Shown here one piece after another: positions 30,844-51,950 of a stretch of DNA of 64,000 nucleotides (position 1 is its first letter; every line of letters starts with the position of its first letter). The position numbers and the translations under genes were made by a program. The stretch is taken from positions 187,150-251,149 of the IMG/VR virus record IMGVR_UViG_3300021963_000023; one strand, written 5' to 3'. The notes under the pieces are model-generated. The model was not told where the DNA came from, made no database searches, and saw only the letters and a list, made by a program, of their open reading frames with translations.

Positions 30844-31675
30844 CCTCGTAACAGTAGTTGGAAGAAACACTCACATATTACCTCATATGCTAAAACACTA
30901 TGAAGGTATGGTAGATAAGATATATGTTGGTGTTTATAGACAACACGAAAACGATGGTATCTTAGAAGAAGTTAGAAATCTTGGTATTGAACCATTTATA
31001 GTTGTTACTGAACCAAAGTATAATTGGAATAAGGTAACTGAAATGTATAATACCATTAAGCGTACCAAACCTAATGAATGGTGGATCGTTTCAGATGATG
31101 ATGAGTTACAAGTATACCCATATGATATCAGAGATATCATTAAAGAATGTGAAGAAAATAATTTTACATTTGTAACCGGTGGATTTTTAGATAGATTAGG
31201 GGAAGGTGGAACATTTCCTATTGTTGAAAGAGATAGTGATATACATAAGCTATTCCCATATGCTGGATTTTTCAGATACCCAATGTCAAATGCGTGCCCG
31301 AATAAAGTCACACTAATGCTTGGTTCTCAAGATGTTACATCTGGCCAACATTATGCTGATTTTGGTAATAATAAGAATAGTTGGGGTAGATGGCATAGAA
31401 AAAGAATGCCAATTGATATTGTTTTCACACAAGTACATCACTTTAAATGGGATTCTACATGCAATACCAGAATTAAGGAGGTTGCGGATACTAGAATTGA
31501 TTATACTTGGTTCTGGGAGTATGAAAAATTATATGAAGAGTTAGAAAAGAACAAGTGGATTGTAGATATTAATAAACCTGAGTTTTTATTTGAAAAACTA
31601 GATAATTTTTCGTATATTAACTTTAATGACTATTCAAAATGGGATGTCTTAAGAGATAAAATTGTAACAATTTAG
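30836..31675 (+). CDS. GT2-like glycosyltransferase
   Basis: LPHMLKHY, WWIVSDDDE, HHFKW. Confidence 0.65.
   Translation: MLNLVTVVGRNTHILPHMLKHYEGMVDKIYVGVYRQHENDGILEEVRNLGIEPFIVVTEPKYNWNKVTEMYNTIKRTKPNEWWIVSDDDELQVYPYDIRDIIKECEENNFTFVTGGFLDRLGEGGTFPIVERDSDIHKLFPYAGFFRYPMSNACPNKVTLMLGSQDVTSGQHYADFGNNKNSWGRWHRKRMPIDIVFTQVHHFKWDSTCNTRIKEVADTRIDYTWFWEYEKLYEELEKNKWIVDINKPEFLFEKLDNFSYINFNDYSKWDVLRDKIVTI
31590..31618 (+). promoter_or_regulatory. Internal sigma70-like promoter TTGAAA-N17-TATATT ahead of radical SAM array
   Basis: Same -10 and 17-nt spacer as the other promoters; ends 60 nt before ATG 31679. Confidence 0.45.
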
Positions 31676-33037: not shown

Positions 33038-33042
33038 AATTT

Positions 33043-34062
33043 ATGTTAGATAAAAAAGATTTTGTTTGTTTACAACCATTTGAGTTCACCGAATTCTTTG
33101 ATTACAAAACATATATGTGCTGTCCTAATTGGTTACCAGTTGATTTGGGTGATCCAATTGATATTAAAAACACCTGGGTTTCTGATCTAGCAAATAAGGT
33201 TAGAGAAAGTATGATAGATGGTAGTTACAAATATTGTATTGAAGCTAGATGTCCTAAATTAACGGGGTTAAAAGAAGGTAAAAGCGAAGGCTTTATGCCA
33301 AAGGAAGAGTTCTTAAGAAAAATCGATCAGTTTAAAGATCCGGTACCCAAAAGTGTTAAATTTAATTTTGATCAAAGCTGTAATCTACAGTGCCCTAGTT
33401 GTCGTTTAGAAAAAATAAATTATGTTGGGGAAGAAAGAACAAGAACGGAATTGATATTACAAAGTATTGAAGAACAATTGTCTGAGGGTCTTGAGCATAT
33501 AGAATGTACCGGATCTGGTGATCCATTTTTTTCTAGAACATTTAAGAAGTGGTTAATGACATTTAAGCCCAGTATGTACCCTAATTTAAAAAGTATACAC
33601 TTACATACCAACGGTACTCTTTGGAACGAATCTAACTGGTCTAAAATGACAAATGTGCATAGATTTATTAAGTCTGCTGAGATATCTGTTGATGCAGCAA
33701 CAAAAGACACGTATGAAAATTATACAAGGTTAGGTGGCAAATGGGAAGACATCCAAAACAATCTTAGGTTTATTGCAACATTACCCAATCTAGAATATGT
33801 TACCATGTCTTTTGTTGTTCAAAATTCAAATTATAAAGAAATGGAAATGTTCTATAAGATGTCAGAAGAAATATTTGATGACACACATATCAATTGGCAG
33901 ATATTTTTTAATAGAGTTGTTAACTGGGGAACATTTAAAAGTGAAGAATTTAAAATTGTTGATGTTGGTAATCCAGAACATCCAAACTACAAAGAGATGA
34001 TTGAAATATACCATAGACTACCTGTTTCTAATAATATTAGACATAATTTAACAATAGAGTAA
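33043..34062 (+). CDS. Radical SAM protein with N-terminal SPASM/Twitch domain
   Basis: CLQPF..CC..C; CNLQCPSC; GSGDPF. Confidence 0.85.
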   Translation: MLDKKDFVCLQPFEFTEFFDYKTYMCCPNWLPVDLGDPIDIKNTWVSDLANKVRESMIDGSYKYCIEARCPKLTGLKEGKSEGFMPKEEFLRKIDQFKDPVPKSVKFNFDQSCNLQCPSCRLEKINYVGEERTRTELILQSIEEQLSEGLEHIECTGSGDPFFSRTFKKWLMTFKPSMYPNLKSIHLHTNGTLWNESNWSKMTNVHRFIKSAEISVDAATKDTYENYTRLGGKWEDIQNNLRFIATLPNLEYVTMSFVVQNSNYKEMEMFYKMSEEIFDDTHINWQIFFNRVVNWGTFKSEEFKIVDVGNPEHPNYKEMIEIYHRLPVSNNIRHNLTIE

Positions 34063-35336
34063 TGATTGAATGTAAAAATTTAACAAATGGTTTTAGAATC
34101 GCCACCTCTGGAGGTTATTTTGCGTGTTGTCACACGTTTAATAACCCATTTAAAGATGAAAATGGTGATGAGATGGTAGCTAGCACACATTCAATTGAAG
34201 AAGGGTTAAAAAGCCCAACTAGAATGAAAATGTTAGATGATTTTAAAAATGATATTAGGCATCCGGCTTGTGTTGTTTGTTGGTCAGCAGAAGATGCTGG
34301 ATTTGTTAGTAAAAGACAAAGAGATAATGAGACATATAAAAAAATACTTGAATTTTACCCAGAAAGAAAAGATTCTGATTTATTTTTTTTAGAATTAAAT
34401 CTTGGTAACACATGTAATCTTGCATGTAGAATATGTCATATATCTGCATCATCAAAATGGAAAGAATTTCATCATGTAACAGAAACCGATGTAACTGAAG
34501 AAAGATTAGACTTTTATGTAGATAAATATTCAAAAGCATTTAGAGACAATAGTATTGTTTGGGCTGAATTAATGAGTATACTTCCTGAAGTTAGAAGTTT
34601 AGACATATATGGGGGTGAACCAATGTTGATGAAAAAGCAATGGGAGATTTTAGAAATGTCCGTTAAGTTGGGGTATTCTAAAAAACAACAAATGAGTTTT
34701 AACACAAACGGTACAATTATAAATGAGAAGTATATTGATATTTTAAGTTCATTTGCACAGTGTAGAATTGGGTTTAGTATTGATGGCGTTGGTAAAAGAT
34801 TCAACTATTTAAGACATTTTGGGAAATGGGATGTGGTTAGTGAAAATATTAATATTTGGCAAAATAAAGTTAAATTAATTCCAGACAATAAAATAATCTT
34901 TGAGGTATGTTGTACTATATCAATGCTAAATGTTCTTCATGTTTTTGAGATGGTTGATTTTGTTATTGAGAACCATTTAAAATTAATGATAGCTTTTGTT
35001 TACAACCCCAGACACTTACACATTGGATATATGCCAGAGAAGTGTAAAAAACTTATTTTAGAAAAACTTGAAGCCGAGTATGATCTTAGGATTACACAAA
35101 TTAATGATGATACAACAATAGATGATTCTGAAAAACAATATAGATGGGATGTAATGAGGCAAGCACATAAAGTTATAAACACATTAAAATTACCTGTTGA
35201 GGGTACACAAGGTGATTGGCAAGAATTTAAGAGACAAACATTAGCATTAGACATTTTAAGGAATGAATCTTTTGCTGATACATTTGCGGATTTAGAAGAA
35301 ATATATAATATTACAAAAACAACAAAATTAATATAA
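34062..35336 (+). CDS. Radical SAM protein with N-terminal SPASM/Twitch domain
   Basis: ACC..CVVCW; CNLACRIC; YGGEP; ends TKLI. Confidence 0.9.
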   Translation: MIECKNLTNGFRIATSGGYFACCHTFNNPFKDENGDEMVASTHSIEEGLKSPTRMKMLDDFKNDIRHPACVVCWSAEDAGFVSKRQRDNETYKKILEFYPERKDSDLFFLELNLGNTCNLACRICHISASSKWKEFHHVTETDVTEERLDFYVDKYSKAFRDNSIVWAELMSILPEVRSLDIYGGEPMLMKKQWEILEMSVKLGYSKKQQMSFNTNGTIINEKYIDILSSFAQCRIGFSIDGVGKRFNYLRHFGKWDVVSENINIWQNKVKLIPDNKIIFEVCCTISMLNVLHVFEMVDFVIENHLKLMIAFVYNPRHLHIGYMPEKCKKLILEKLEAEYDLRITQINDDTTIDDSEKQYRWDVMRQAHKVINTLKLPVEGTQGDWQEFKRQTLALDILRNESFADTFADLEEIYNITKTTKLI

Positions 35337-35337
35337 G

Positions 35338-36810
35338 ATGTCAGAAAGACTATTAAAATTTAAAGAAGAAAAATTAGATTCAGTTAGCTGTAGCTTCTGT
35401 CCTGCTAAGTGGTATAATGCAACTATCGATTTAGGTAGTGGTTATAGTAGGTCATGTTTCCTACCATTACCACACCCAATTGATTTAGAAGAAATTAAAA
35501 CAAACCCATCAGCATTACATAACACTTCACATAAAAAGAAAATGAGAAGAATGATGTTATCAGGTATTAGACCTGCTGAATGTTCTTATTGTTGGAAGGT
35601 TGATGACATTGGTAGAAACAATATTTCAGATAGAGTTTATAGAAGCATGGAATACAAACATGAAGATATTGATATCTTAAAAGATTTACCTTGGGATGCT
35701 GATGTTAATTTGAGAACCGTAGAACTATCATTTGATAGAAGTTGTAATTTTGCTTGTTCATATTGTAACCCAAGCTATTCAACAACCTGGGGTAAAGATA
35801 TTGATGAACATGGACCATATCAAAAATTTAAAACATTAACTGCTGGTGCATATCAACAAAACGGTTCATGGGCAGATCCTGAAAATAAATTTATTGGTGA
35901 TAACCCATATGTTACAGCATTTTTAGAATGGTGGCCAGACTTATCAAAAGATTTACAAACATTAAGAATCACTGGTGGTGAACCATCAACTAGTCATAAC
36001 TTTTGGAAATTCTTAGATAAAATTAAAGATCAATCATATCCTAATTTAAATCTATCTATAAATTCTAATTTAGGTGTTAAAGATGAATTGATTGATAAAT
36101 TAATTAGAACAACCCACGAATTAGATATTCAATCATATGACATCTACACAAGTTGTGAATCATATGGTGATCACGCAGAATATCTTAGAGATGGTTTAAT
36201 TTATTCTAAATGGAGAGGTAATGTTGTTAGAATGATTGAAGAGGCTAACATTAGACAAATTGTAATCATGATGACTGTGACTGGTTTATCATTAATGTCA
36301 ATGACTGAGTTCATGGATGATATGTTGGAGTTAAAGAAAAAGTATGGTCCTAATAAACCAACAATGGATCTTAACTTCTTAAGATGGCCAGGATTTATGT
36401 CACCATTGAATTTACCAGATAATATTAAGATTGAAGCTAAAAATAAAATTCAAGTTTGGTTAGATAAGAATAGAGATTCTGGTTTATTATTAGAACATGA
36501 GATAACACAAACACAAAGAGTAATTGATTACATTGATGTTGTTGATCAAGGACACGCTAGAGCTGAGTTCGATAAAGATAAACACTTCCATGACTTCAAA
36601 AGTTTTTATGTACAATATGATATTAGAAGAAACAAAGACTTTAGAAAAACATTCCCAATGTTAGTTGATTGGTACGATTCTATTCAAATAGACAACTATA
36701 TACCAGATGTTAAATTGTCTGGTGGTGGTATGGAAGGTTGGGAGCTTGGTGAATATAAACCAGACATCATGGCTAGAAATGAAGCCAGACAAAAAAATGA
36801 TTTAAACTAA
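35338..36810 (+). CDS. Radical SAM protein with N-terminal SPASM/Twitch domain
   Basis: FCPAKW..C..CSYCW; CNFACSYC; TGGEP. Confidence 0.9.
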   Translation: MSERLLKFKEEKLDSVSCSFCPAKWYNATIDLGSGYSRSCFLPLPHPIDLEEIKTNPSALHNTSHKKKMRRMMLSGIRPAECSYCWKVDDIGRNNISDRVYRSMEYKHEDIDILKDLPWDADVNLRTVELSFDRSCNFACSYCNPSYSTTWGKDIDEHGPYQKFKTLTAGAYQQNGSWADPENKFIGDNPYVTAFLEWWPDLSKDLQTLRITGGEPSTSHNFWKFLDKIKDQSYPNLNLSINSNLGVKDELIDKLIRTTHELDIQSYDIYTSCESYGDHAEYLRDGLIYSKWRGNVVRMIEEANIRQIVIMMTVTGLSLMSMTEFMDDMLELKKKYGPNKPTMDLNFLRWPGFMSPLNLPDNIKIEAKNKIQVWLDKNRDSGLLLEHEITQTQRVIDYIDVVDQGHARAEFDKDKHFHDFKSFYVQYDIRRNKDFRKTFPMLVDWYDSIQIDNYIPDVKLSGGGMEGWELGEYKPDIMARNEARQKNDLN

Positions 36811-38109
36811 ATGGAAAAAAATTATAATAAAGAAACCTTTTGTGTTGCTCCATGGATTGCATCGCATTTAAGTACATTTGGAAATGTTGTTCCTTGTTGT
36901 TTATATAAACAAGAACGAGTTTTCGGAGAACTTAAACAAGGTGTTCCATTAAATGAAATGTATAATTCTGATGTTGCAAAGGATATTAGAAAAAGATTGT
37001 GGAATGGTGAGAAGATAAATGAGTGTCAAATTTGCTGGTATAGAGAAGAGGTTTCAAAAGGGAAGAGCCAAGTTGATAGTTACAGATTTAATTTAAACAA
37101 ACAGTTTGAAGATGAAATAGAAAACATTGTGGATAACACAAATGAAGATTTTTCATTAAAAATTATACAATTTAAACACTTAGATCTACGTTTTGATAAT
37201 AAATGTAATTTAAAATGTAGGATTTGTAATCCCGGTTTTTCATCATCATTATATAAAGAGTATAAAGCGTTAGGCTTCAATAATTTTAAAGATTATGGTC
37301 AACCATATAGTATGTCGGTTGATGATGATGAGTTTAATTTTATTTTAAGCCAATTAAAGCATGTTAAGTCATTATTTTTTGCTGGTGGCGAACCATTAAC
37401 ACAAGATAAACATTATCAAATATTACAATACTGCATAGACAATGACTATGCTAAAAATATAACAGTGTGGGTTACAACCAATTTCACAAAATTATATTAT
37501 AAAGATTACAATATAATTGAGATGTGGAAGAAGTTCAAAGCTGTTGAGATAACAGCGAGTATAGATGGGTTTGAAGAGAGAGGTCAATACCTTAGAAGCG
37601 GATCCAAATGGTCTGAAATAGTTGAGAATAGAAAAACACTTTTGAGAGAACTACCAGATACTTTTTTTGGAATTGTACCAACAATTAACATAATGAATAG
37701 CTATACCATAATTGATTTATATAAAAATTGGATAGAAAATGGCTACTTACTTCCCGGTAAAATCCATATTAATTTATTGACACATCCAGAACACCTTCAG
37801 ATAAAAATGCTACCTGAAAGACATAAAGAGGTTCTTAGAATATTGTATAATAACCTTATAATTTGGATAAAAAATAACATAGCGGATAACAGTGAAGCAC
37901 AACGAGACATAGGACAATTTGAATTTGTAATAGACTTGTTAAATCAAGAAAGAGATGAAGAAATGTTCCAAAAGTTTTTAAAAATGACAGACATGGTTGA
38001 CACATTCAGAGGTGATGATTTCTTTTCTGTGTTTACTGAGTTTAGAGATTTTATTGATCCAAATGTTATCATTGAATTACCCAAAGATGATAATGTAAAA
38101 TTATTATAA
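36811..38109 (+). CDS. Radical SAM protein with N-terminal SPASM/Twitch domain
   Basis: FCVAPW..PCC..CQICW; CNLKCRIC; AGGEP; ends VKLL. Confidence 0.9.
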   Translation: MEKNYNKETFCVAPWIASHLSTFGNVVPCCLYKQERVFGELKQGVPLNEMYNSDVAKDIRKRLWNGEKINECQICWYREEVSKGKSQVDSYRFNLNKQFEDEIENIVDNTNEDFSLKIIQFKHLDLRFDNKCNLKCRICNPGFSSSLYKEYKALGFNNFKDYGQPYSMSVDDDEFNFILSQLKHVKSLFFAGGEPLTQDKHYQILQYCIDNDYAKNITVWVTTNFTKLYYKDYNIIEMWKKFKAVEITASIDGFEERGQYLRSGSKWSEIVENRKTLLRELPDTFFGIVPTINIMNSYTIIDLYKNWIENGYLLPGKIHINLLTHPEHLQIKMLPERHKEVLRILYNNLIIWIKNNIADNSEAQRDIGQFEFVIDLLNQERDEEMFQKFLKMTDMVDTFRGDDFFSVFTEFRDFIDPNVIIELPKDDNVKLL

Positions 38110-39332
38110 TGAATTCCATCTCAGAAAAATTTTGCTATTTACCCTTTGGTTCAATTTATGTTGGGGCATCTGGTACACTATCACCTTGTTGTATTGCTTC
38201 TCCATTTAAAGAGAATATTCATTTCAAGGATTTCAATTCTGTTGATGAAGCAATTAATAGCGAACCATATAAACGTATTAGAAAAGAGATGTTATTTAAT
38301 ATTGCGCCATCTGAATGTGCGGAATGTTTTGTATATAAAAATAGACACAAAGAACATAGTAATATTGAGTTTAGAGAAGAAATAGCGGACCCATCATTAT
38401 ATAATGAAGACTATAGTGTAAACAAAATTGTTTACACAGATTTGAGACTTTCTAATCATTGTAATTTTAAATGTAGAATGTGTTTTCATGGATCATCATC
38501 AACCTGGTTTGAGTATTGGGGATATGTTCAAAATCAACCAGAATATGATACCATCAATACCAAGTACTTAACAGCGGGTGACGACGCTCTTGATAAGTTT
38601 TCAGAAGAAAATATTGATTCTATTCGTAAAGTTTATTTAGCTGGTGGTGAACCATTTATAACGCCAACAACATTTACCTTGTTAGATAGATTCAGTGACG
38701 AACAGGCTAAAAATGTTTATATATTAATTAATACAAACTTATCCACACTAACATACAAAGGTATTGACATACTTGATAAACTTAAACGTTTTAAAACTGT
38801 AGACATCTCTTGTTCATGTGATGGGTATGGTAAAATTGGTGAATATCAAAGACCAGGATTTAATTCTGAAAAATTCTTTAAAAATCTGGAAACGCTAATT
38901 AAGTTTAAAGAAACCAACGACAATTTCAAAGTTTCTATTGATTATACTATTTCAACAATAAACATGTACCATTCTTTTGATTTCATAAAGTTTGTTGAAG
39001 AAAATTACCTCCATTCAGATCACATTAGGTTTCATACTGTGACTCAACCTTTTTATTTTGCACCTGGAATTTGTAAGGGTGGCATGAAACAAGCGTTAAT
39101 AGAACTTTATGAAAACAACATAAACAATTTAACATCACTTTGTAGATATACGTTGATTGAATTTGTTAAATATTTAAGAAACACTGAGGATGAGGAAGTT
39201 TATAGCCACCTATTAGATAAGAAGAAATATGTTACTATTTCACTACCGGAAACCTTAAGGAGATTTGACGAAATTAATAAAACCGATTATAAGGAAATAT
39301 GCCCATGGTTAGGTGATATTTTTATTGATTAA
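38109..39332 (+). CDS. Radical SAM protein with N-terminal SPASM/Twitch domain
   Basis: FCYLPF..PCC..CAEC; CNFKCRMC; AGGEP. Confidence 0.9.
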   Translation: MNSISEKFCYLPFGSIYVGASGTLSPCCIASPFKENIHFKDFNSVDEAINSEPYKRIRKEMLFNIAPSECAECFVYKNRHKEHSNIEFREEIADPSLYNEDYSVNKIVYTDLRLSNHCNFKCRMCFHGSSSTWFEYWGYVQNQPEYDTINTKYLTAGDDALDKFSEENIDSIRKVYLAGGEPFITPTTFTLLDRFSDEQAKNVYILINTNLSTLTYKGIDILDKLKRFKTVDISCSCDGYGKIGEYQRPGFNSEKFFKNLETLIKFKETNDNFKVSIDYTISTINMYHSFDFIKFVEENYLHSDHIRFHTVTQPFYFAPGICKGGMKQALIELYENNINNLTSLCRYTLIEFVKYLRNTEDEEVYSHLLDKKKYVTISLPETLRRFDEINKTDYKEICPWLGDIFID

Positions 39333-39370: not shown

Positions 39371-39805
39371 ATGATATACTGGTTAACTGGACAACCCGGA
39401 GCAGGTAAAACAACCCTAGCAAAATACTTGGTGGAATATTTCCCTCAAAACGAGGTTACTCACATTGATGGGGATGATCTAAGAGACATCTTTAATAATA
39501 AAGACTATTCCATTACAGGAAGAAGACTAAACATCCAAAGAGCACAATACATTGCGCAATTCATGCATAGTAAAGGACACAATGTCATTGTATCCTTAGT
39601 TTCACCGTATAGAGATCAGAGAGAGGCATTTAAGTTCAGCACATCGGTTGTTGAGATTTATGTTCACACCACAGAAGATCGAGGTAGAAATCAATTCCAC
39701 GTTGAGGAATATGAACCACCATTAGAAAATTTTATAGATATAGACACAACAATAAAGAACGAGACAGATTCATATTATGAACTGTTAAAAAAATTATCAT
39801 TATGA
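39371..39805 (+). CDS. cysC: Adenylyl-sulfate (APS) kinase
   Basis: WLTGQPGAGKTT P-loop, IDGD.LR, SLVSPY, YEPP. Confidence 0.85.
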   Translation: MIYWLTGQPGAGKTTLAKYLVEYFPQNEVTHIDGDDLRDIFNNKDYSITGRRLNIQRAQYIAQFMHSKGHNVIVSLVSPYRDQREAFKFSTSVVEIYVHTTEDRGRNQFHVEEYEPPLENFIDIDTTIKNETDSYYELLKKLSL

Positions 39806-40182
39806 GTAAAAAATACGCAATGTATGTTGGTAGATGGCAAAATTGGCATAAGGGCCACGAATGGCTTATTAACCAACAATTAGATAAAGGAAAAGATGTG
39901 TGGGTTGCAATTAGGAACGTGCCAACGGATGAAAATAACCCTAAGACCGCACAGCAAGTTATGATGGATCTAAGTGAAGAACCTTTCTTTAGAGAAAATT
40001 CACAAAGAATTAACATATCAATTATTCCTGATATTGAGAGCATTAATTATGGTAGAGGGGTTGGTTATGATGTAATATACCACGAACCTCCTGCGGATGT
40101 GGCGGTTATTAGTGGAACGGCAATTAGAACCGGACATATGACACCCGATGGTACAATAACATATGACCAAACTAAAGGATAA
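39802..40182 (+). CDS. HxGH-family (cytidylyltransferase-like) nucleotidyltransferase
   Basis: GRWQNWHKGH, YGRGVGY, ISGTAIR. Confidence 0.75.
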   Translation: MSKKYAMYVGRWQNWHKGHEWLINQQLDKGKDVWVAIRNVPTDENNPKTAQQVMMDLSEEPFFRENSQRINISIIPDIESINYGRGVGYDVIYHEPPADVAVISGTAIRTGHMTPDGTITYDQTKG

Positions 40183-42055: not shown

Positions 42056-42694
42056 ATGGAAAAGATATTTTTTGATGACACAACATACATTTGGAAAACC
42101 AAATTAAATTATACAGGTGATAAATCATCTTTTTTAAAAGAAGCGTACTCTCTTATAGAATCCCAACCTAAAGTTAAATCAGATGGATTTGGATATAAAA
42201 GAGAATGGAACGAACATTTAAATTTTATTGGTGATGTTAAGGTTGAAACAAAATTAGATGAAATTTTTAAAATCGGTATTAATAAATGTAAAGAAATTTA
42301 TAATGAAAAAAATATAAATTACAATAAAATCAATACAGACTCTTGGGTTAATGTTGTTCGATCAAAAAATCCAGTACAAGACAATTTTCACAATGGTAAA
42401 AAATATCATATACATACCGAAATTAATAAAGGAAACAAACAATTTATTCCACACTATACATATGTTTATTATATTCAAATGCCAGATGTAATGAATGGCG
42501 ATGATGGTGTATTGTGTTTTTTAGGTGAAAATAAGAAAGAATATTTCATCAAACCAGAAGAAGATGATTTAATTATTATGGAGGCACATATCCCACACTC
42601 TCCAAATAGTGCACCAAACTCCACATTAGATAGAATAGTTATGGCTGGAAACGTTGGTTTTGATTTTATTAAAAAAGAAAAAACAATATTATAA
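42056..42694 (+). CDS. 2OG-Fe(II) oxygenase-like (DSBH) protein
   Basis: WVN, HIH, YVYY, PEE.DL...H.P, RIV.AGN; ends KTIL. Confidence 0.65.
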   Translation: MEKIFFDDTTYIWKTKLNYTGDKSSFLKEAYSLIESQPKVKSDGFGYKREWNEHLNFIGDVKVETKLDEIFKIGINKCKEIYNEKNINYNKINTDSWVNVVRSKNPVQDNFHNGKKYHIHTEINKGNKQFIPHYTYVYYIQMPDVMNGDDGVLCFLGENKKEYFIKPEEDDLIIMEAHIPHSPNSAPNSTLDRIVMAGNVGFDFIKKEKTIL

Positions 42695-43416
42695 TGCTAG
42701 TAGAAAATAAATTTTTATTTGTAAATCTACCAAGATGTGCTTCAACCTCTTTTCATATATCATGTTTAAGAAGTGGATTTAAAATTGAACATTACGGCCA
42801 ATCATTTGTAGACAATTATCATACACCAATTAATTTAACACTTAGTAATGAAGAGCTAGCAGACAACATGGTTCATCTTCATGAAAGATTAGATGTGTTA
42901 CTTTCAAAATTTGGGAATGAATATGATATCATATCCATAAAAAGAGATAAGTACGAAAGATTCTTATCATTGTGGAAGCATATAATCGATATAGCACACA
43001 TGGAAGGTAATATCGAATTATATAATATATTTAAAAAACTAGAGTTAGAAGATATTTTATTTTATAATTATTCAGATTTAATATCGAATGAGGAGTCTGT
43101 AATATCTGAATTTGTGAGAAGAAATAAAATTGAAAAACATATGACAGACATTCTTTATACTATGTTAATTATTTTAGTTAGACATGTCTCATTTTGGCAT
43201 AATAATAATCCCAAAATAAAATGGTTTGAATTTGGTGAGTTTACAGAATTAGAAGAATGGGTTTCTAATAAAACAGGTAAACCATTTAAAATGGGGAAAT
43301 CAAATGGAAGTCAACATTTTGATTGCAAATTAAAAATGAATAGTGATTTCATAAAAAGATATAATAATATTTATGATTATTATGATTTTCAAAAAAATGT
43401 TAAGACACTAATATAA
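42694..43416 (+). CDS. Sulfotransferase (family 2-like)
   Basis: FVNLPRCASTS PAPS loop, RDKYERFLS; ends KTLI. Confidence 0.7.
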   Translation: MLVENKFLFVNLPRCASTSFHISCLRSGFKIEHYGQSFVDNYHTPINLTLSNEELADNMVHLHERLDVLLSKFGNEYDIISIKRDKYERFLSLWKHIIDIAHMEGNIELYNIFKKLELEDILFYNYSDLISNEESVISEFVRRNKIEKHMTDILYTMLIILVRHVSFWHNNNPKIKWFEFGEFTELEEWVSNKTGKPFKMGKSNGSQHFDCKLKMNSDFIKRYNNIYDYYDFQKNVKTLI

Positions 43417-43417
43417 C

Positions 43418-43720
43418 ATGATTAACACCCCTAATATCGATTATAAAGAAATATTTGAAGCCTGGAAAATTTCACTCAAACCAACACTAAAACAAGAAGA
43501 ATTGGCTAAACTTAGGCTTGAGGTTTGTTTGGGGTGTAATTATAGAAAAGAAGTGGTTAAGGGGTTAAAATGGAGCACTCTTTGTGGAAAATGTGGATGC
43601 CCCTTAAATAAAAAAGTGTTTTCCCCAAATTATAATTCCTGCCCAGAAAAATTATGGGGTGATATTGATTCTAATTATTTGGAACCTCTTAACCCCAAAA
43701 ATAAAAACACTTTAATATAA
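43418..43720 (+). CDS. Small Cys-rich (Zn-finger-like) protein
   Basis: RLEVCLGC...CGKCGCPL..K....CP...W; ends NTLI. Confidence 0.65.
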   Translation: MINTPNIDYKEIFEAWKISLKPTLKQEELAKLRLEVCLGCNYRKEVVKGLKWSTLCGKCGCPLNKKVFSPNYNSCPEKLWGDIDSNYLEPLNPKNKNTLI

Positions 43721-43805: not shown

Positions 43806-45299
43806 ATGAAAGCAACAATAATTGGTAGTGATTTTTTACAAAAAGATGGTTCGGTCAAATTTTTGGAAATAAATACAAACACCACAATCTATAATGAGGG
43901 CGCGGATTTGTTAGAATATGACGCGTTATTTAATATGTTAAATGTTAATAATATTACAGAATTTCATTATATATGGACGGAAAATGATGCATATAGCCCA
44001 TTAAATCAGGCACACAGATTTGTGCAAATATTAAAAACAAAATGTGAGGAAAATAATATATCATATACTGATCATATTGTGCCAATGAATTCGGTAACTG
44101 TACCTTTTATTGAAGACGCTAATAATAAATTTATCTTAAGACAGTCCTTTGATACTACCGCATTGGTAGATGAAACATATTGTGCTGATAAATTTGAATT
44201 TTTTAATTTAATGAAAGATTCACAATATATCCCCAAAACACATTACACATCGGATACATTAAATTTAAATACTTTGGATGAGGTGAATTATACTGATACT
44301 GAAAACCCAAACGTATTAATAAAATATCGTTATCCACAATATGATAAATCATTATACCCGGCCCTATATGCAGTTTCTAATAATACCGAATTATCTGATA
44401 CAATAAATTCTGCTGAAAGTAATTTTTTAGTTCAAGAATTTATATTTTCAGAAGAAAATTTGGTGGAGGGTAGATATTCGATTATAAGAGGGATTGATAT
44501 CATATATGGGTCTAATTTAGATGTTATTAATATGGGTGGCTATAGTCAATCCACGATAATACCGGTTTTATTTGCAACTACAGAACTTATTCCCAATACA
44601 AAAAAATTAAACCAAAAAAGTAGATACAAATATATTACAAAAGATGTTGGTGGATCAAAAGGAAAAGATTATCATACCGATGATGATTCAAATATTTTAA
44701 ACTATGATGGCTCATTAACAAATGTTAGTACAATACAATTGGGTGATTATGTTCGTTCTATTAATTTTGTGGATTCAAATGAAAATGAAGCTAAAGCTTT
44801 TACTAATGAAATTTTAACATACGGTTGGGATAGTACATTACAGCAATCAAATGACACATTAGTACCATTACAATCTGAATTAGTGGGTATGATATCATCA
44901 TCAGTTGAAATGGTAATGATAAAAATAACATTAGAAGATGGTAGAACTTGGTCAGATACTCCTGCGTGTGTATATTATATTGAAGAAAAAGATTCAACAG
45001 CAACTAGGTTTGAAAAGGTAAATAGTCTATATGTTGGTGATAAATTAGTTATAACCGATTCAAATACTAATCAATTAACAACCATAACAATTACGGGATT
45101 AGAAATGATATATGAAACCAAAACAATTTACACATTAGATTTTGCACCTTCTGATTTATTCTTAGTTGATATTGGCGATTTTCAATTTAGTGTAATGCAT
45201 AATGGTTGCTGGTGTAGTTATTCATATTGTGGTAACTGGTGTTATTCATCATGGTGTCCAACCTGTCAATATGGCGGGTTTCAAAAATTTCAACCCTAA
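43806..45299 (+). CDS. Circularly permuted ATP-grasp-like domain + Hint domain + C-terminal Cys-rich peptide
   Basis: N-terminal D......KFLEINTN, later VLIK and LVQEFI; Hint-like SNILNYDGS...IQLGDYVRS ... LYVGDKL ... IYTLDF...VMHN; then GCWCSYSYCGNWCYSSWCPTCQYGGFQKFQP. Confidence 0.7.
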   Translation: MKATIIGSDFLQKDGSVKFLEINTNTTIYNEGADLLEYDALFNMLNVNNITEFHYIWTENDAYSPLNQAHRFVQILKTKCEENNISYTDHIVPMNSVTVPFIEDANNKFILRQSFDTTALVDETYCADKFEFFNLMKDSQYIPKTHYTSDTLNLNTLDEVNYTDTENPNVLIKYRYPQYDKSLYPALYAVSNNTELSDTINSAESNFLVQEFIFSEENLVEGRYSIIRGIDIIYGSNLDVINMGGYSQSTIIPVLFATTELIPNTKKLNQKSRYKYITKDVGGSKGKDYHTDDDSNILNYDGSLTNVSTIQLGDYVRSINFVDSNENEAKAFTNEILTYGWDSTLQQSNDTLVPLQSELVGMISSSVEMVMIKITLEDGRTWSDTPACVYYIEEKDSTATRFEKVNSLYVGDKLVITDSNTNQLTTITITGLEMIYETKTIYTLDFAPSDLFLVDIGDFQFSVMHNGCWCSYSYCGNWCYSSWCPTCQYGGFQKFQP

Positions 45300-45333: not shown

Positions 45334-45480
45334 ATGGCAAAGACCCCAAAAATAAGAGAAGAAAGACCATCAACTGTTATCAAGTTAGTAATTAGTCCAC
45401 TATCTACGGATGTAAAGACAAAAATATCAACAGCATTTCAAGCAGTTGTTACCGCTATAAAAGATAAACACTTATCATAA
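45334..45480 (+). CDS. Small 48-aa basic protein (not in ORF track)
   Basis: ATG 45334 to TAA 45480: MAKTPKIREERPSTVIKLVISPLSTDVKTKISTAFQAVVTAIKDKHLS; A-rich leader; fills the gap between neighbours. Confidence 0.6.
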   Translation: MAKTPKIREERPSTVIKLVISPLSTDVKTKISTAFQAVVTAIKDKHLS

Positions 45481-45515
45481 GTTAAAAAGACGAATGTTTG
45501 TTCATCCATTTATAT

Positions 45516-46085
45516 ATGATAAATCATTCAATCAATAATAACGTATTTACACAAACCGAATGTCTTGATATAATTGATTTTTGTATTCAACACGGTAAAC
45601 CTTTTTCATATCGTCCGAATGAATTTTGGGATTGTAGAAGAATACATGATGAGGGATTTAAGGAACAAATAATTACTTCATTAATGAATAATTATAAAAC
45701 CGGGAATTTTAATTTATGGTTTGATTTTGATGATTTTAATCTAAGGAATTTTCTTATTAGTTTAACATCTTATTACGATGGTAGATACCTAAATTTACAC
45801 AAAGATATTGATAGTGAGTTAACGTCGGTAATTGTATTATCAAATGGATTTGAAGGTGGTCAATTCGCATTAAGTGATAGTAACAGACCAGATATTCATT
45901 TTAATAAAATGGATGATATTACTACTTATGATTTAAAAATTGGTGATATGATATCCTTCAATGGGTCAAAAACCTATCATGGGGTTTTACCGGTCACAAA
46001 TGGTACACGATATGCCTTAAATATTTGGATGGATAACATCAATTCTGACCGATTAAAACGTAAAGTTGAAAAAACATTGATATGA
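45516..46085 (+). CDS. 2OG-Fe(II) oxygenase
   Basis: LHKD, FEGGQF, HGVLPV..G.RYAL; ends KTLI. ATG 45516 preferred over TTG 45498. Confidence 0.8.
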   Translation: MINHSINNNVFTQTECLDIIDFCIQHGKPFSYRPNEFWDCRRIHDEGFKEQIITSLMNNYKTGNFNLWFDFDDFNLRNFLISLTSYYDGRYLNLHKDIDSELTSVIVLSNGFEGGQFALSDSNRPDIHFNKMDDITTYDLKIGDMISFNGSKTYHGVLPVTNGTRYALNIWMDNINSDRLKRKVEKTLI

Positions 46086-46579
46086 GTATATTAATTGTTG
46101 CATTACCTAGAACCGGTTCAACTTCATTATTATATAAATTAGCAAAAGAAAAGGGATTAACTCCGATATTTGAACCATTCGATAATAGTGGAAGATTTAA
46201 GTATAATGGTGAAAAAAACGTAGTCCTTAAAACAATAATATGTCATCACCCAAACAATTTTGAATTAAGTAAGTACTTTGACAAGGTAATATTATTATCT
46301 AGAAAAAATATATTAGAATGTGTAGAATCTCACGCATACCAAATCTACTTCTCAAAAAAGAAAAATTACAATTCAAATCATCAATATTATTACGAAGAAG
46401 TACCATCTAAGTTATTTGATTTATGTTATAATGATGTAATGAAATGGAATAAGGATTTGAGTGAATTATCTTATAGACTTAACACCCCAATTACATATTA
46501 TGAAGACATATATGATATCAATAGTAATGAAAGATTACGAAAAGGGAATAAAAGTGAATTTAATAAAAAACTAATTTAA
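46082..46579 (+). CDS. Sulfotransferase-like P-loop protein
   Basis: ALPRTGSTS, FEPF, LSRKN, YYED; ends KKLI. Confidence 0.7.
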   Translation: MSILIVALPRTGSTSLLYKLAKEKGLTPIFEPFDNSGRFKYNGEKNVVLKTIICHHPNNFELSKYFDKVILLSRKNILECVESHAYQIYFSKKKNYNSNHQYYYEEVPSKLFDLCYNDVMKWNKDLSELSYRLNTPITYYEDIYDINSNERLRKGNKSEFNKKLI

Positions 46580-46584
46580 TTATT

Positions 46585-46992
46585 GTGAATTATACAACAC
46601 CATATGATTTTTTAAAAAATTGTGTAATGACTAGAATCAAACCAAGTGGGGTACACGGTGTTGGTGTTTTTGCAATTAGGGATATTAAAAAGGGTGAAAC
46701 CGTTTTTGAATTTTGGCAAGGAAAAACGGGGATATATGAAATTTCTAAAGCTGAGTTTGACACCTTTTCAGAGGAATTACAAGATTTTATAAGAGCAATG
46801 CGTGGTCACCCGTATAAAGTTAAACTTACAAATGGGTGTGTATATGGTTGTACAAATCATTATATTAATACAAATTTTGAAAACGGAACGGTTGATTGTT
46901 TCACATTTAAAGCATTGGCCGATATTCCATTAAATGAGGAGTTGTTTAGTAATTATGGGAATAACCATAGACATGAATATAAATTAATATAA
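46585..46992 (+). CDS. SET-domain protein
   Basis: SGVHGVGVFAIRDIKKGE, YIN, DI..NEEL..NYG; ends YKLI. Confidence 0.75.
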   Translation: MNYTTPYDFLKNCVMTRIKPSGVHGVGVFAIRDIKKGETVFEFWQGKTGIYEISKAEFDTFSEELQDFIRAMRGHPYKVKLTNGCVYGCTNHYINTNFENGTVDCFTFKALADIPLNEELFSNYGNNHRHEYKLI

Positions 46993-47633: not shown

Positions 47634-50600
47634 ATGAATATATTTGATCCTCACATATCGGGCTCCCTATCAGTATCTGGTTCGGGAGAAATTTCAGGAG
47701 ACTTAAGGGTACTGGGTACCATTTCTGGCTCTATTAAGGGAGACGGGTCTCAACTCTTTAATATACCCTCTAGCGGTGTTACAGGGCTCAATTTAACACG
47801 AATTGCTGATGGGGTTGCCACAGCATCCATTTCTTCAGCAAACGGCTTAAGAATTAACTCAAATACCGAAATTACGGGGACATTAAAACTTAATAAAGTA
47901 AACTTAGGTAGTAACAACATTGTTGATATTACTCTTACAGATGGGGGAGGGAAATATTTCATCAACGGAGTTAGAGCTCCAAGGTTATCCTTCATTAAGG
48001 GATTCAAATATAGATTTTATTTTAATAACAATAACGTACACCCATTACTTTTTTCTTTAACTAGCGAAGGGGAACACAATGGAGGTACAATATATACCAC
48101 TGGAATAACAACCAACTCCGACCCTTTTTATGTTGAAGTTGATGTTACCGATGCCACAGCCACAACATTCTATTATTGGTGTGACCATCACGTTGGGATG
48201 GGTAATGCTATAACAGTATATTCGGATTTTATACATGGTCAATCTAGTATTGGTCTCATTAACGTAGATACAACTGCACTTGCCACAACCGGGTCAAATA
48301 ACTTTACAAATATTCAAAGAACAAGTGGGTCCTTAGTGGTGACCGGTTCCGTTGATATCACAGGTTCAATTACATTGAATGGTCAAGCAATTGGAACAGG
48401 AAAATTGGATGAAACAACATTTCAATCATATACAAGTTCAAACGATTCAACCAACTCAACACAAAATAGTCGGTTAACATCAATCGAGTCTGCAACGAGT
48501 AGTTTGAATTCATTTACTAGTTCCATCGATAATACAATTAAAAATAAACTTAATACGGAAGCAGTTATAACTGGAAGCGTTCAAGTTTTAATAACAGGAA
48601 CAACAGGATATTCCACGTTTAGCTCAAGTGTGTCTACAAGTATAGGTTCATTATCTAGTTCAGTTGCCACCACAACAAGTGGATTATCATCTAGCATTGG
48701 TTCTTTGAGTTCTAGTGTTGATTCTTTATCCTCATCAATTGCAACAACAACTAGTGGGTTAAGTTCTAGTGTTGCAACAACAACAAGTGGATTAAGCTCA
48801 AGTATTGGAAGTTTATCTTCGTCTTTTAGTTCCACTAATGATACTCAGAATGGTAAATTAACAAGTATTGAAACATCAACAAGTAGTTTAAATACATTTA
48901 CTAGTTCTATTGACACAACAATTAAAAATAAACTTAACACAGAAACGGTTATATCGGGAAGTGTTCAAGTTATAATAACAGGAACAACTGGTTATTCAAC
49001 ATTCAGCTCAAGTATATCAACAAGTGTAGGATTATTAAGTTCGTCAGTTGCTACAACAACAAGTGGATTAAGCTCAAGTATTGGAAGTTTATCTTCATCT
49101 TTTAGTTCTACCAGTGATGCACAGAATAATAAAATTACAAGTATTGAAACATCAACAAGTAGTTTAAATTCATATACAAGTAGTAATATTACTAACATAA
49201 ATGCAATTCATACATCAACAGGTAGTTTAAATACATTTAGTTCATCAATATTAGGTAGTATTGAACTTACTGGTTCTAATTTAACAGTTAAAGGAGATTT
49301 ACTTGTTAAAGGAACAACAACACAAATCGATTCAACAACCGTAAACATTGGCGATAATATCATTCAATTAAATGGTACTGGTGCAACCAATGCGGGTATT
49401 GTTGTTAGAGATGCAACAGCACCAAATACCATTTCAGGATCATTGTTATGGGACACAACAAATGATTATTGGAAGGCTGGAATTGTAGGAAGTGAAGAAA
49501 AAATAATTCTTAATACTGAATACTCAACGTTCTCTACATCAATAGATTCTAGAGCAACTAGTTTACAAACATCAACAAGTTCTTTAAACACATATACCAG
49601 TTCTAATAATACTAACATAAGTGCTATTCACACATCAACCGGTAGTTTAAATACATTTACATCTAGTGCTAATACTAAATTTGGTGTTATCGAAACCTCC
49701 ACATCAAGTTTAAATACATTTACTTCTTCGTTATTAACGGCAATAGAGTTAACAGGTTCTAACCTTACAGTTAGAGGTAACTTCTTGGTTAAAGGTACAA
49801 CAACAAACGTTAATACAACAACGTTAGATGTTGATAATAATCTAATTAACTTAAATGGTAATGGTGCGTCATTTGCTGGTATACGAGTTAAAGATACAAC
49901 AGGTCCAAATTTAATATCAGGGTCATTATTATGGGATGCAACAAATGATTATTGGATTGCGGGTCAATTAGGTTCAGAACAAAGATTAGTAAGAGAAACA
50001 GAATTTAACAATGCCGTTACAAGAGTAGGTAATGTTGAAACTTCAACAGGTTCATTAAACTCTTTTACGAGTTCTATTAATACAACCATTAAAACAAAAT
50101 TAAATACTGAAGGTGTTTTAAGTGGATCCATTCAAGTTAATCACAATACAACAACAAATTATGTTGCAAATGAACATATAAACCATACGGCGGTTTCAAT
50201 TACTGCAGGAAGTGGTTTAACTGGTGGCGGAGATATATCAACAACACGGACAATTAATGTGGGTGCGGGTAACGGTATAACAGTAAATGCTGATGATATT
50301 GCAATTGATACATCGTCAGCAACATTTACCACGGGTGTTAAAACTAAATTAAATACTGAAGGTGTAATATCAGGTTCTGCACAAGTTACTGGATTAAGTA
50401 ACGCACAATTAACAAACTCATCGTTTCATGTTGGAACAACATCAATATCATTAGGTAGAACAAGTGCGTCTCAAACATTAACGGGAATATCAATTGATGG
50501 CACCTCAGCTTATGCCACTCAATGGGGTACTAGTGCTGGATATGCTAATTTTAGTTCAACTGCTATATCAAGTGGTGTAGGATGGGTTTTGGGTACTACA

Positions 50601-51950
50601 GGCAATGGTTATTATGCTCCTGTTTCACTTGCTAGTGTGTCTTCTTTACTAAACTTAAGTGGTACAAACACGGGTGATGAAACATTAGCGAGAGTAAATG
50701 CATTAGCAATAACCACAGTGGGCACAATTACTTCAGGTACTTGGAACGGTACTGCAATTGGAAATGCATATTTGGCAAACTCATCTTTTCATGTTGGAAC
50801 AACATCAATATCATTAGGTAGGGCATCCGCATCACAAACATTAACGGGAGTATCGATTGATGGTAATGCCGCAACAGTAACAAACGCAACCTTCTATCGT
50901 CAGTTCACGGTAAGAGATGATAGAAGCGATGGAGGTAATTATAATTTATCAGGAAGAGCAACTGGTTTATATGCGATTGAAAGTTCAGGATCTAATGGTC
51001 CGGGTTCTGGGTATTTAAGTTTGATACACGTTGCTAATGGTACAGATGTTGCTTTCCAAATTGCGGGTGGATATACCTCTGATAATATGTATTTTAGAGG
51101 AACATCAGCATTACAAAGCGGAACTGGATATAGTGCTTGGAGAACGGTTATTCATAGTGGTAACATTGGTTCACAAACAGTATCAAACGTATCTGGAACG
51201 GTTGCAATTGCTAATGGTGGAACAGCAGCAACAGACGCAACAACAGCAAGAACAAATTTAGGTTTAGCAATTGGTACAAACGTTTTAGCATATAGAACAT
51301 TTGGAACTGCGGCAAATAGTGCAACAGGAGATTTTGCAACAGCAGCACAAGGAACAACCGCAGATGCCGCATTAGCTAGATCGGGTGGAACCATGACGGG
51401 TAATTTACTATTCTCTAACAAGGGTATTAACATGAAGAGAGATAGTGGTGCGAATACAGGTATATCTTGGTATTCTACATCATATTCAGCGTGGTGTGAT
51501 TATATGTCACCAGCAGCGACGACAGGTTGTGGCCCGAATGGTAATATTACCGCACCAGCAGGAACATATGTAACTTCGTGGGGATTAAGACGGTTTATTG
51601 AGGATAACGCGGGATTTGGTTGGACTTGGGAATCAGGAACATCAACTCAAGTAACACCAACTATTAAAGCAGAATTAAGAGCATCTGATGGTTTATTTAG
51701 TGTTGCTGGTGCAATGTATTCTGCGGGTAGTGTTGTGAAAACTGTTGCTAACTCATCATATTCAACATCATTTAGTAGTGTATCATCAGTAACAGTTACA
51801 CATAGTTTAGGAACAAAAGACGTGGCAGTATTTGTTTATGACAGTTCAGATAATATGTTCTGGCCATCATCAATCGTTACAACAAGCACATCGGTGGTTA
51901 CAATAACTTTTTCATCTTCTAGATCAGGTAGGGTTGTAGTTGTAAGATAA
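47634..51950 (+). CDS. Long tail fibre with cupredoxin-like N-proximal domain
   Basis: HPLLF...YYWCDHHVGMG; cassettes shared with 4928 and 19979; C-terminal HSLGT..V.VYD module; TATTTATC at 47606-13. Confidence 0.8.
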   Translation: MNIFDPHISGSLSVSGSGEISGDLRVLGTISGSIKGDGSQLFNIPSSGVTGLNLTRIADGVATASISSANGLRINSNTEITGTLKLNKVNLGSNNIVDITLTDGGGKYFINGVRAPRLSFIKGFKYRFYFNNNNVHPLLFSLTSEGEHNGGTIYTTGITTNSDPFYVEVDVTDATATTFYYWCDHHVGMGNAITVYSDFIHGQSSIGLINVDTTALATTGSNNFTNIQRTSGSLVVTGSVDITGSITLNGQAIGTGKLDETTFQSYTSSNDSTNSTQNSRLTSIESATSSLNSFTSSIDNTIKNKLNTEAVITGSVQVLITGTTGYSTFSSSVSTSIGSLSSSVATTTSGLSSSIGSLSSSVDSLSSSIATTTSGLSSSVATTTSGLSSSIGSLSSSFSSTNDTQNGKLTSIETSTSSLNTFTSSIDTTIKNKLNTETVISGSVQVIITGTTGYSTFSSSISTSVGLLSSSVATTTSGLSSSIGSLSSSFSSTSDAQNNKITSIETSTSSLNSYTSSNITNINAIHTSTGSLNTFSSSILGSIELTGSNLTVKGDLLVKGTTTQIDSTTVNIGDNIIQLNGTGATNAGIVVRDATAPNTISGSLLWDTTNDYWKAGIVGSEEKIILNTEYSTFSTSIDSRATSLQTSTSSLNTYTSSNNTNISAIHTSTGSLNTFTSSANTKFGVIETSTSSLNTFTSSLLTAIELTGSNLTVRGNFLVKGTTTNVNTTTLDVDNNLINLNGNGASFAGIRVKDTTGPNLISGSLLWDATNDYWIAGQLGSEQRLVRETEFNNAVTRVGNVETSTGSLNSFTSSINTTIKTKLNTEGVLSGSIQVNHNTTTNYVANEHINHTAVSITAGSGLTGGGDISTTRTINVGAGNGITVNADDIAIDTSSATFTTGVKTKLNTEGVISGSAQVTGLSNAQLTNSSFHVGTTSISLGRTSASQTLTGISIDGTSAYATQWGTSAGYANFSSTAISSGVGWVLGTTGNGYYAPVSLASVSSLLNLSGTNTGDETLARVNALAITTVGTITSGTWNGTAIGNAYLANSSFHVGTTSISLGRASASQTLTGVSIDGNAATVTNATFYRQFTVRDDRSDGGNYNLSGRATGLYAIESSGSNGPGSGYLSLIHVANGTDVAFQIAGGYTSDNMYFRGTSALQSGTGYSAWRTVIHSGNIGSQTVSNVSGTVAIANGGTAATDATTARTNLGLAIGTNVLAYRTFGTAANSATGDFATAAQGTTADAALARSGGTMTGNLLFSNKGINMKRDSGANTGISWYSTSYSAWCDYMSPAATTGCGPNGNITAPAGTYVTSWGLRRFIEDNAGFGWTWESGTSTQVTPTIKAELRASDGLFSVAGAMYSAGSVVKTVANSSYSTSFSSVSSVTVTHSLGTKDVAVFVYDSSDNMFWPSSIVTTSTSVVTITFSSSRSGRVVVVR

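Follow-up and report, generated by a model that had tools for sequence, protein, structure and literature searches.

A 64,000-nt stretch of the IMG/VR virus record IMGVR_UViG_3300021963_000023 (positions 187,150 to 251,149 of that record; hereafter the window) contains an open reading frame (ORF), 43806-45299 on the plus strand, by which an uncultured giant phage encodes a protein of 497 amino acids (aa). The first-pass annotation, made from the letters of the window, described a three-part protein: an N-terminal ATP-grasp-like amide ligase, a Hint-like domain and, directly after a His-Asn (HN) pair, a short Cys-rich tail. This architecture was borne out, and every motif quoted for it was found in place: KFLEINTN covers residues 18-25, ahead of VLIK (170-173) and LVQEFI (208-213); HTDDDSNILNYDG begins at residue 290 (nt 44673); TPAC is formed by residues 385-388 and HN by residues 465-466. 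Public metagenomes yielded 648 homologues of ~495 aa that match end to end and keep the same layout, and with the conserved HN and Cys scaffold they place the three-part ORF far beyond chance. An exhaustive deep profile search gave 319 cluster representatives at 50% identity. Residue counts given below refer to an alignment of 121 diverse members, reaching down to ~20% identity, and the architectures after HN were read from 150 representatives. Codon analysis of 57 unique genes revealed ratios of nonsynonymous to synonymous substitution (dN/dS) of 0.22-0.23 for the two domains and 0.25 for the core of the tail. The ORF is real, and purifying selection acts on it. The AlphaFold2 (AF2) model built on a shallow alignment was unusable, with a predicted local distance difference test score (pLDDT) of 47; a deep alignment remedied this, giving a pLDDT of 90.9 and a predicted template-modelling score of 0.86, with pLDDT below 50 in residues 471-497 only.

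Residues ~286-466 form a Hint domain. A PDB search by hmmsearch with the 121-member profile returned the KlbA intein 2jmz as the best match (E 6e-9), together with the PolII, VMA and RadA inteins, hedgehog 1at0 and a bacterial intein-like (BIL) domain. Foldseek comparison of the deep-alignment model against the PDB yielded 1at0 with a template-modelling (TM) score of 0.78 (E 1e-7), and the RecA intein (2in0) with TM 0.80, and Hint proteins were returned from the viral library BFVD too. Alignment of this domain (Hint1) by hhalign with the canonical Hint2 domain of the family's own members gave a probability of 98.4% (E 8e-15) and mapped H290 to Cys1, T385 to Thr(B:7), C388 to His(B:10) and D450 to His(F:13). 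The earlier assignment of His to the Cys1 position, and of the Cys of TPAC to that of the block-B His, is thereby upheld. The Cys1 column contains His in 38 members, Lys in 18, Gly in 15 and other residues in the rest, and the window protein has no Cys or Ser nucleophile at this position. The B:10 column contains Ser (53), Thr (21), Ala (13), Asn (9) and Cys (7), with His outside the six commonest residues, and the Thr-x-x-His motif of block B is broken in the window protein (T385...C388). At F:13, where D450 aligns, Asp is found in 77 members and His in 27; F:4 reads as Thr in an alignment made by eye, with no Cys shown in that column. The terminal pair, which the first-pass annotation had described as kept, is indeed retained almost throughout, with H465 in 115 of the 121 members and N466 in 120.

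In inteins, cyclisation of Asn(G:7) cuts the C-terminal junction, aided by His(G:6) and His(F:13), and the N-terminal steps require Cys1 and block B and are blocked by loss of Cys1 (PMC4031507). In the window family the position-1 nucleophile and the block-B His are lost and HN is kept; therefore, the domain is predicted to keep the C-terminal chemistry alone, so that C-terminal cleavage by Asn cyclisation is plausible and splicing is not. Without Asn-cyclisation chemistry there is no easy account of why HN is conserved in 95-99% of members at ~20% identity and why F:13 is Asp or His. Similar to BIL and hedgehog domains, with which it shares the fold (Foldseek TM 0.77-0.79 to 2lwy, 1at0 and 6tyy), the window Hint has a C-terminal His-Asn and no requirement for a nucleophile at +1; BIL and hedgehog domains autoprocess rather than splice (PMC4031507). 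Those domains retain both Cys1 and TxxH in block B and work at the N-terminal junction, whereas the window family has lost both and would act at the C-terminal junction only; canonical BIL-like units occur as extra domains in some family members.

A genuine intein lacking Cys1, of class 2 or class 3, which would splice the N-terminal domain to the tail through the Cys that follows HN, was also considered. The best PDB sequence match is itself a class 2 intein without Cys1, KlbA, and a Cys is present at +2. Splicing by class 2 inteins depends on Thr(B:7), His(B:10), Asp(F:4) and Cys+1 (PMC4031507). In the family, however, B:10 is Cys, Ser or Thr rather than His, and F:4 is Thr by eye, with no Cys shown there. 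The +1 residue is Gly in the window protein and G, S, N, A, D, T or Y among its relatives, variable and in many members non-nucleophilic, and some have no nucleophile after HN. In addition, the Hint domain occupies one fixed position in every member instead of occurring sporadically. Splicing was rejected on the catalytic residues, and we consider it extremely improbable.

The tail contains 6 Cys, 3 Trp and 4 Tyr in 31 aa. Its scaffold, HN-x-C-W-C-x4-C-G-x2-C-x4-C-x2-C, is kept in nearly all of the 120 close homologues among the matches listed. The dN/dS is 0.40 at the non-Cys positions and 0.61 over the last ten residues. The tail is thus coding sequence under constraint, fixed in its scaffold, looser in its loops and not hypervariable. 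The Cys-rich peptide directly after HN therefore stands as first described; of the pattern that had been expected among homologues, the Cys spacing and a conserved core neighbourhood were found, and the expected variability proved moderate and under purifying selection (dN/dS 0.25-0.61). Across the family, the segments after HN are 33-fold enriched in Cys, enriched in Gly, Trp and Pro as well, and depleted in Asp and Glu (0.4-0.5 times the body). The Cys count is even in 80 of 81 Cys-rich tails (6 Cys in 36, 8 Cys in 33), which we read as full disulfide pairing; a metallothionein-like tail was judged unlikely, since the tails are aromatic-rich and their Cys counts even. Of 118 close members, 117 have a Lys among the final five residues and no other in the last 45; in the deep representatives, such a near-terminal Lys is found in 72% against 15% expected. 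The tail thus has the form of the core peptide of a ribosomally synthesised and post-translationally modified peptide (RiPP): it is encoded by a gene, its scaffold is conserved and other positions vary.

What follows HN differs among members. Cys-rich tails, typically of 20-100 aa, are found in 91 of the 121. Five members have a Cys-rich stretch and then a complete BIL-like Hint (Cys1 ... HN, followed by just K, KK or KF); in 15, HN leads almost directly into a BIL-like Hint, and some of these have two; about 8 have 5-8 residues after HN. In a few representatives a self-cleaving module, Peptidase_S74, comes after the Cys-rich stretch. Two paralogues, 46% identical, on the 211-kb phage contig IMGVR_UViG_3300042892_005961 (L088 and L148) bear an 8-Cys and a 6-Cys tail. 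With cargoes swapped in this way, the post-HN position resembles a cassette site attached to a processing engine that stays the same, and the Cys-rich stretch, where a Cys1-bearing Hint or Peptidase_S74 comes next, is often bracketed by self-cleaving modules.

Two other explanations draw on this cargo. In the first, the system would serve conflict like a polymorphic toxin: the Hint would release a variable toxic or signalling peptide against competing phages, hosts or grazers, and the small ORFs nearby would be immunity proteins or chaperones. Similar to pretoxin-HINT (PF07591), in which a Hint immediately precedes a variable C-terminal cassette and is thought to release it, the window Hint lies directly before its cargo, and PF07591 matches the extra Hint domains of family members. 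Cargo varies widely, down to the two paralogues with different tails in one genome, and small conserved ORFs are directly adjacent. The family differs from pretoxin-HINT in having no trafficking domain, a cargo that is a Cys-rich peptide of 20-100 aa, a ligase-like fusion partner and an occurrence in viruses only. Pfam scans of 69 members found no secretion, trafficking or toxin domain; the tails evolve under purifying rather than diversifying selection (dN/dS 0.25-0.6), and the adjacent mini-ORF is conserved instead of co-varying with the tail. We regard a toxin-like role as very unlikely. In the second explanation, the protein is a structural accessory of the virion or an adhesin, and Hint cleavage, comparable to that by Peptidase_S74 in tail spikes, matures or releases a small knob, aromatic and rich in Cys, which attaches to glycans on the host surface or serves as decoration of the particle. 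Tails rich in Gly, aromatics and Cys are compatible with this role, such richness being typical of small carbohydrate-binding knots, and so are the even Cys counts, which suggest an extracellular, oxidised state, the intramolecular-chaperone module Peptidase_S74 after the Cys-rich stretch of some members, and the tail-fibre genes upstream in the window. On the other hand, the gene lies ~25 kb from the tail-fibre gene, amid enzymes rather than structural genes, no PHROG structural family is matched, and near-invariant residues of catalytic type in the N-terminal domain argue for an enzyme. Maturation of a virion part is, in our view, improbable, if less so than a toxin.

These near-invariant residues are D9 (119 of 121), E21 and N23 (both 121 of 121), R112, D122, K173 and R228 (120-121 of 121) and P168 (119-121 of 121). 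The order of elements, with the D...E-x-N Mg hairpin first, followed by the K173 strand, the QEF hinge and R228, reads as a circular permutation of that in ATP-grasp enzymes. Comparison with E. coli DdlB by hhalign placed residues 8-32 on 256-280 (P 9.5e-4, probability 22%), where D9, E21 and N23 fall on D257, E270 and N272. Sixty-nine diverse members were scanned individually, and TIGR00768, the RimK family, was the sole non-Hint family to recur at a meaningful E-value, in 5 of them (best E 1.3e-3). Residues 1-40 of one of these, P0209, align with positions 229-268 of the 276 in TIGR00768; therefore, the protein starts with the end of RimK. The RimK hidden Markov model gave weak matches on two diagonals, RimK 31-184 with family 62-214 and RimK 244-273 with family 5-35, which took 11 and 9 of 45 hits versus 0-3 and 0 in reversed or shuffled sequences. 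The Mg-binding D...E-x-N motif of ATP-grasp enzymes is thus present by both alignments and by conservation. We consider it likely, from the motifs and weak profile matches, that this domain is a candidate permuted RimK-like ATP-grasp ligase. The motif order on which the first-pass annotation had based its circularly permuted ATP-grasp stands, and the call itself rests on these motifs and weak matches, with no curated threshold reached. Its suggested kinship with the glutathionylspermidine synthase family did not hold: RimK is the best-supported relative, and in the Pfam scan of the 69 members GSP_synth appeared weakly in one (E 0.011) and RimK weakly in two.

Taken together, it is on balance probable that the protein is a self-processing fusion of enzyme and peptide, in which the Hint domain frees a disulfide-forming peptide and the ligase-like domain makes an ATP-dependent amide bond with it. 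Upon folding, Asn466 would cyclise and cut the chain at N466|G467, freeing a tail peptide of ~3.6 kDa with a new alpha-amine, which would be fully disulfide-bonded through three disulfides. This predicted self-release of the peptide is likely. The ATP-grasp domain would then spend ATP on an amide bond involving the freed peptide, for which the new N-terminus or the near-terminal Lys would be the likeliest nucleophile.

Several observations weigh against this reading. Isolated C-terminal cleavage is slow in canonical inteins, and mutation of the block-B His or the F:4 Asp reduces it drastically in KlbA, a class 2 intein (PMC4031507). In the window Hint the block-B His is absent and the F:4 Asp probably so. 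The ~8 members with short tails and the 15 with a second Hint mean that peptide release cannot be the sole purpose of HN. For the ligase-like domain, the window protein has no match in Pfam and none in NCBIfam, and curated ATP-grasp thresholds are reached nowhere; P0209 scores 12 bits against TIGR00768, where the cut-off is 143. Relocating residues 1-30 to the end of the protein brought no gain in hhalign, and a shallow RimK profile aligned with the hairpin only (P ~0.09-0.13). The structural check proposed for both domains confirmed the Hint fold, and in three Foldseek searches (PDB, BFVD and the poor model) the top 50 were all Hint, with ATP-grasp absent among the matches listed. The tail, in addition, has no conserved Asp or Glu for graspetide-type crosslinks. 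Finally, halogenase and 2-oxoglutarate (2OG) oxygenase genes are common in Kyanoviridae, for example HTVC008M, where they lie amid structural genes and have no annotated counterpart of the target; such genes being common in marine T4-like phages without the target, their proximity to it is weak evidence of a shared pathway.

The main rival is an enzyme that does not cleave itself, with the degenerate Hint as a structural or adaptor module, a tail that stays attached as a metal-binding or disulfide-stapled part, and another substrate such as a small molecule or a virion protein. It would account for the loss of the N-terminal catalytic residues of the Hint, and of the block-B His with the probable lack of the F:4 Asp, as well as for members in which hardly any tail follows HN; the tail evolves about as fast as the body, and the upstream partner is small, Cys-rich and possibly metal-binding. 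It sits poorly with an HN pair that outlasts divergence to ~20% identity beside an Asp or His at F:13, with the exchange of unrelated cargoes, self-cleaving modules included, after HN, and with the AF2 model, in which the tail is left undocked (pLDDT <50). We therefore hold a non-cleaving enzyme to be unlikely, though a serious alternative.

The proposed self-processing fusion can be compared with known peptide systems. Enzyme-fused ribosomal precursors, as in borosins, and Hint-released cassettes, as in polymorphic toxins, are already known. Borosin precursors bear the core peptide at the C-terminus of their own modifying enzyme, and proteolysis releases it later. Similar to borosins, the window protein unites an enzyme and a ribosomal core in one polypeptide; it differs in its predicted built-in protease, the Hint, and in an ATP-grasp-like enzyme in place of a methyltransferase. 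Graspetides, such as microviridins, are RiPPs modified by ATP-grasp enzymes, and their cores require an acidic side chain, Asp or Glu, together with one of Thr, Ser or Lys. The window system likewise pairs an ATP-grasp(-like) enzyme with a ribosomal peptide, but its tail is rich in Cys and aromatics without a conserved acidic residue, and its precursor is fused to the enzyme with the Hint between them. Graspetide-type crosslinking was rejected because the tails have no conserved acidic residues.

The features of the gene and its linked neighbours are listed in Table 1. Neighbourhood counts are from 80 loci of the window's subfamily, and the survey of partners by group (A, B and C) covered 243 loci.

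Table 1. The target gene, its parts and the syntenic partner genes in the window
Feature	Position	Strand	Basis or occurrence
Whole gene, 497 aa, permuted-ATP-grasp-like / Hint / Cys-rich-tail protein	43806..45299	+	80/80 loci
N-terminal domain, residues 1-285, candidate circularly permuted RimK-like ATP-grasp ligase	43806..44660	+	Motifs, weak profile matches
N-terminal beta-hairpin, residues 1-30, D9...E21-x-N23, equivalent of the classical ATP-grasp C-terminal Mg-binding hairpin	43806..43895	+	hhalign, TIGR00768
Hint domain, residues 286-466, without N-terminal nucleophile (H290) and block-B His (C388), D450 at F:13	44661..45203	+	PDB profile, Foldseek, hhalign
Terminal His465-Asn466, predicted Asn-cyclisation cleavage site N466|G467	45198..45203	+	Conservation; mechanism PMC4031507
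31-aa tail, 6-Cys scaffold x-C-W-C-x4-C-G-x2-C-x4-C-x2-C, aromatic-rich, near-terminal Lys	45204..45296	+	Homologues, dN/dS
212-aa 2OG-Fe(II) oxygenase-like protein	42056..42694	+	67/73 loci; Pfam 2OG-FeII_Oxy_3 E 1.6e-3; phrog_81 E 4e-7
240-aa protein, weakly sulfotransferase-like (PRCASTS loop)	42694..43416	+	74/74 loci
100-aa Cys-rich protein (C-x2-C ... C-x2-C-x-C-P ... C-P..W)	43418..43720	+	Directly upstream in 75/76 loci
48-aa mini-ORF, conserved C-terminus ...IK.KHL(S)	45334..45480	+	79/80 loci (tblastn)
195-aa 2OG-Fe(II) oxygenase	45498..46085	+	63/80 loci; Pfam E 4.8e-9
165-aa protein, PRTGST P-loop, sulfotransferase-like by eye	46082..46579	+	52/79 loci; no family match (Pfam, PHROG)

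The partners persist beside relatives at 20-45% identity. The 100-aa Cys protein is present in 96% of group A loci and 99% of those in group B, shows 38-39% identity to the copies beside distant family members, has 496 unnamed homologues and matches phrog_13558 (E 2e-7); it is probably metal-binding. The ~230-250-aa protein accompanies 96% of group A and 83% of group B. Its window copy matches phrog_3347, a Gal-3-O-sulfotransferase family (E 3e-4), and a homologue adjoins the distant member P0185 (E 5e-43). A PDB profile search with the 240-aa and 100-aa proteins found nothing significant, the 240-aa protein has no Pfam match, and the partner proteins gave no informative match in Pfam or the PDB. 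The KHL-ending mini-ORF directly follows the stop codon in 64 of 75 loci of group A and 27 of 75 of group C, and in none of group B. A supposed fusion of P0260 with this mini-ORF was rejected, as no significant similarity was found. 2OG oxygenases are found beside the gene in 99% of group A, 87% of group B and 72% of group C. In addition, a homologue of flavin-dependent Trp halogenases lies ~2.4 kb upstream in 42 of 78 group A loci (54% of the window's subfamily), for example at 1220-2446 in locus L083 and 6415-7644 in L085. Cyanophages and Pelagibacter phage HTVC008M commonly carry relatives of this halogenase, and a search for a halogenase near the target gene gave no match in the window's own contig.

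Among the genes proposed at first as tailoring partners, the 2OG oxygenases are linked to the target, with the reservation already made that they are common in marine T4-like phages without it. The SET gene and most radical S-adenosylmethionine (SAM) genes are not conserved with it: matches to the SET gene, to two glycosyltransferase-lectin genes and to four of the six radical SAM genes were confined to 0-5 loci, all in near-identical genomes. Of the fifth and sixth radical SAM genes, one has three weak matches (29% identity) and the other paralogous matches in 24 loci, mostly elsewhere. No gene of this set accompanies the target as a conserved partner. The earlier list of neighbours also missed three linked genes, those of the 100-aa Cys protein, the ~45-aa KHL mini-ORF and the ~240-aa protein.

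Some of these unlinked or partly linked genes are described here in their own right. The SET-domain protein (135 aa, 46585-46992, Pfam E 7.5e-8), found in 5 loci of the window's subfamily, nevertheless lies beside 36% of the distant relatives of Hint2 type. The radical SAM genes, six in a row, cover 31679-39332 (339-490 aa), and in three of their products the SPASM-type Fe-S domain is N-terminal, whereas its usual place is C-terminal. At 28010-30843, two tandem proteins contain both a concanavalin-A-like lectin domain and a family 7 galactosyltransferase domain of eukaryotic type (Glyco_transf_7N/7C), and a GT2-like gene follows them (30836-31675). An APS-kinase-like gene and a small kinase/cytidylyltransferase-like gene (39371-40182) are present in 28-38 of the 80 related loci. 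These two genes, with the two PRxxST P-loop proteins (42694-43416 and 46082-46579), hint at a sulfation module.

RimK/LysX-type ATP-grasp ligases modify the C-terminus of a small protein (S6, LysW). The window family shares with them (TIGR00768) the D...E-x-N Mg hairpin, the Lys strand and the Arg, and a small partner with a conserved C-terminus adjoins the target, a likeness to their small-protein substrates. It differs in its permuted order, with the hairpin N-terminal, in its fusion to a Hint and in scores far below threshold. For the amide bond proposed above, the likeliest partner carboxylate would be the peptide's own C-terminus or the KHL carboxy-terminus of the 45-aa partner protein, and the ~100-aa Cys protein, the ~240-aa protein, the 2OG oxygenases and, in many relatives, the Trp halogenase are candidate helpers or tailoring enzymes. 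A wider pathway is conceivable but doubtful: the phages would make disulfide-rich peptides from an all-in-one precursor, the ligase would cyclise the peptide or ligate it, for example to the KHL terminus, and the linked oxygenases, Trp halogenases and sulfotransferase-like proteins would optionally hydroxylate, halogenate or sulfate it.

The known roles of Hint domains are splicing, hedgehog maturation and toxin release. If the wider pathway is right, it would add a biosynthetic logic to those known for peptide natural products and a further use to those of the Hint, widespread in uncultured large aquatic phages. The domain itself would be a natural, dedicated C-terminal self-cleaver whose N-terminal chemistry was given up across hundreds of phage lineages. 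The fusion points to an undescribed phage route to small peptides. To our knowledge, the substrates of marine-phage 2OG oxygenases and halogenases have not been identified so far, and the system provides a concrete candidate context for them. A single-turnover C-terminal cleaver and a permuted ATP-grasp could also serve as parts for protein engineering.

The target protein has no match in Pfam or PHROGs. Among 50,697 cultured phage genomes, no match was found by DNA search or by tblastn with the target, two distant members and the 100-aa partner. The window subfamily was not found in 185,579 species genomes, where the deep group is represented by a single 2.8-kb contig in a Cyanobium metagenome-assembled genome (MAG), a faint sign that picocyanobacteria are among the hosts. 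The family is effectively virus-only. Literature searches found no description of the ligase-Hint-Cys-tail architecture; it is undescribed in the databases, cultured phages and literature searched, and its parts belong to known superfamilies. The window is 100% identical to part of a 251-kb IMG/VR contig (L004), and contigs with loci of the window's subfamily reach 316 kb. A 10-kb contig with the gene (L061, IMGVR_UViG_GVMAG-M-3300009164-63_000001) is binned in a 'giant virus' MAG; it is probably a mis-binned phage contig, because the context is of phage type everywhere else.

Elsewhere in the window, four very large ORFs of 1135-1438 aa have no clear family match (4928-9004, 11739-15146, 19979-23449 and 47634-51950), and in the same block as these lies a tail-fibre-like gene (16587-18263; PHROG tail-fibre matches, E 1e-22). 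A DUF401 or citrate-transporter-like membrane protein is encoded at 60645-61652 (Pfam E 3e-10). A promoter and terminator scan showed no excess over shuffled sequences. A gene-junction motif behind the '...TLI*' endings was dropped, as TTAATATG occurs nine times, twice at gene starts. Most plus-strand gene starts have A/T-rich sequence upstream with few Shine-Dalgarno-like motifs, as judged by eye. The GC content of the window is 33%, and many stop codons overlap the next start (ATGA).

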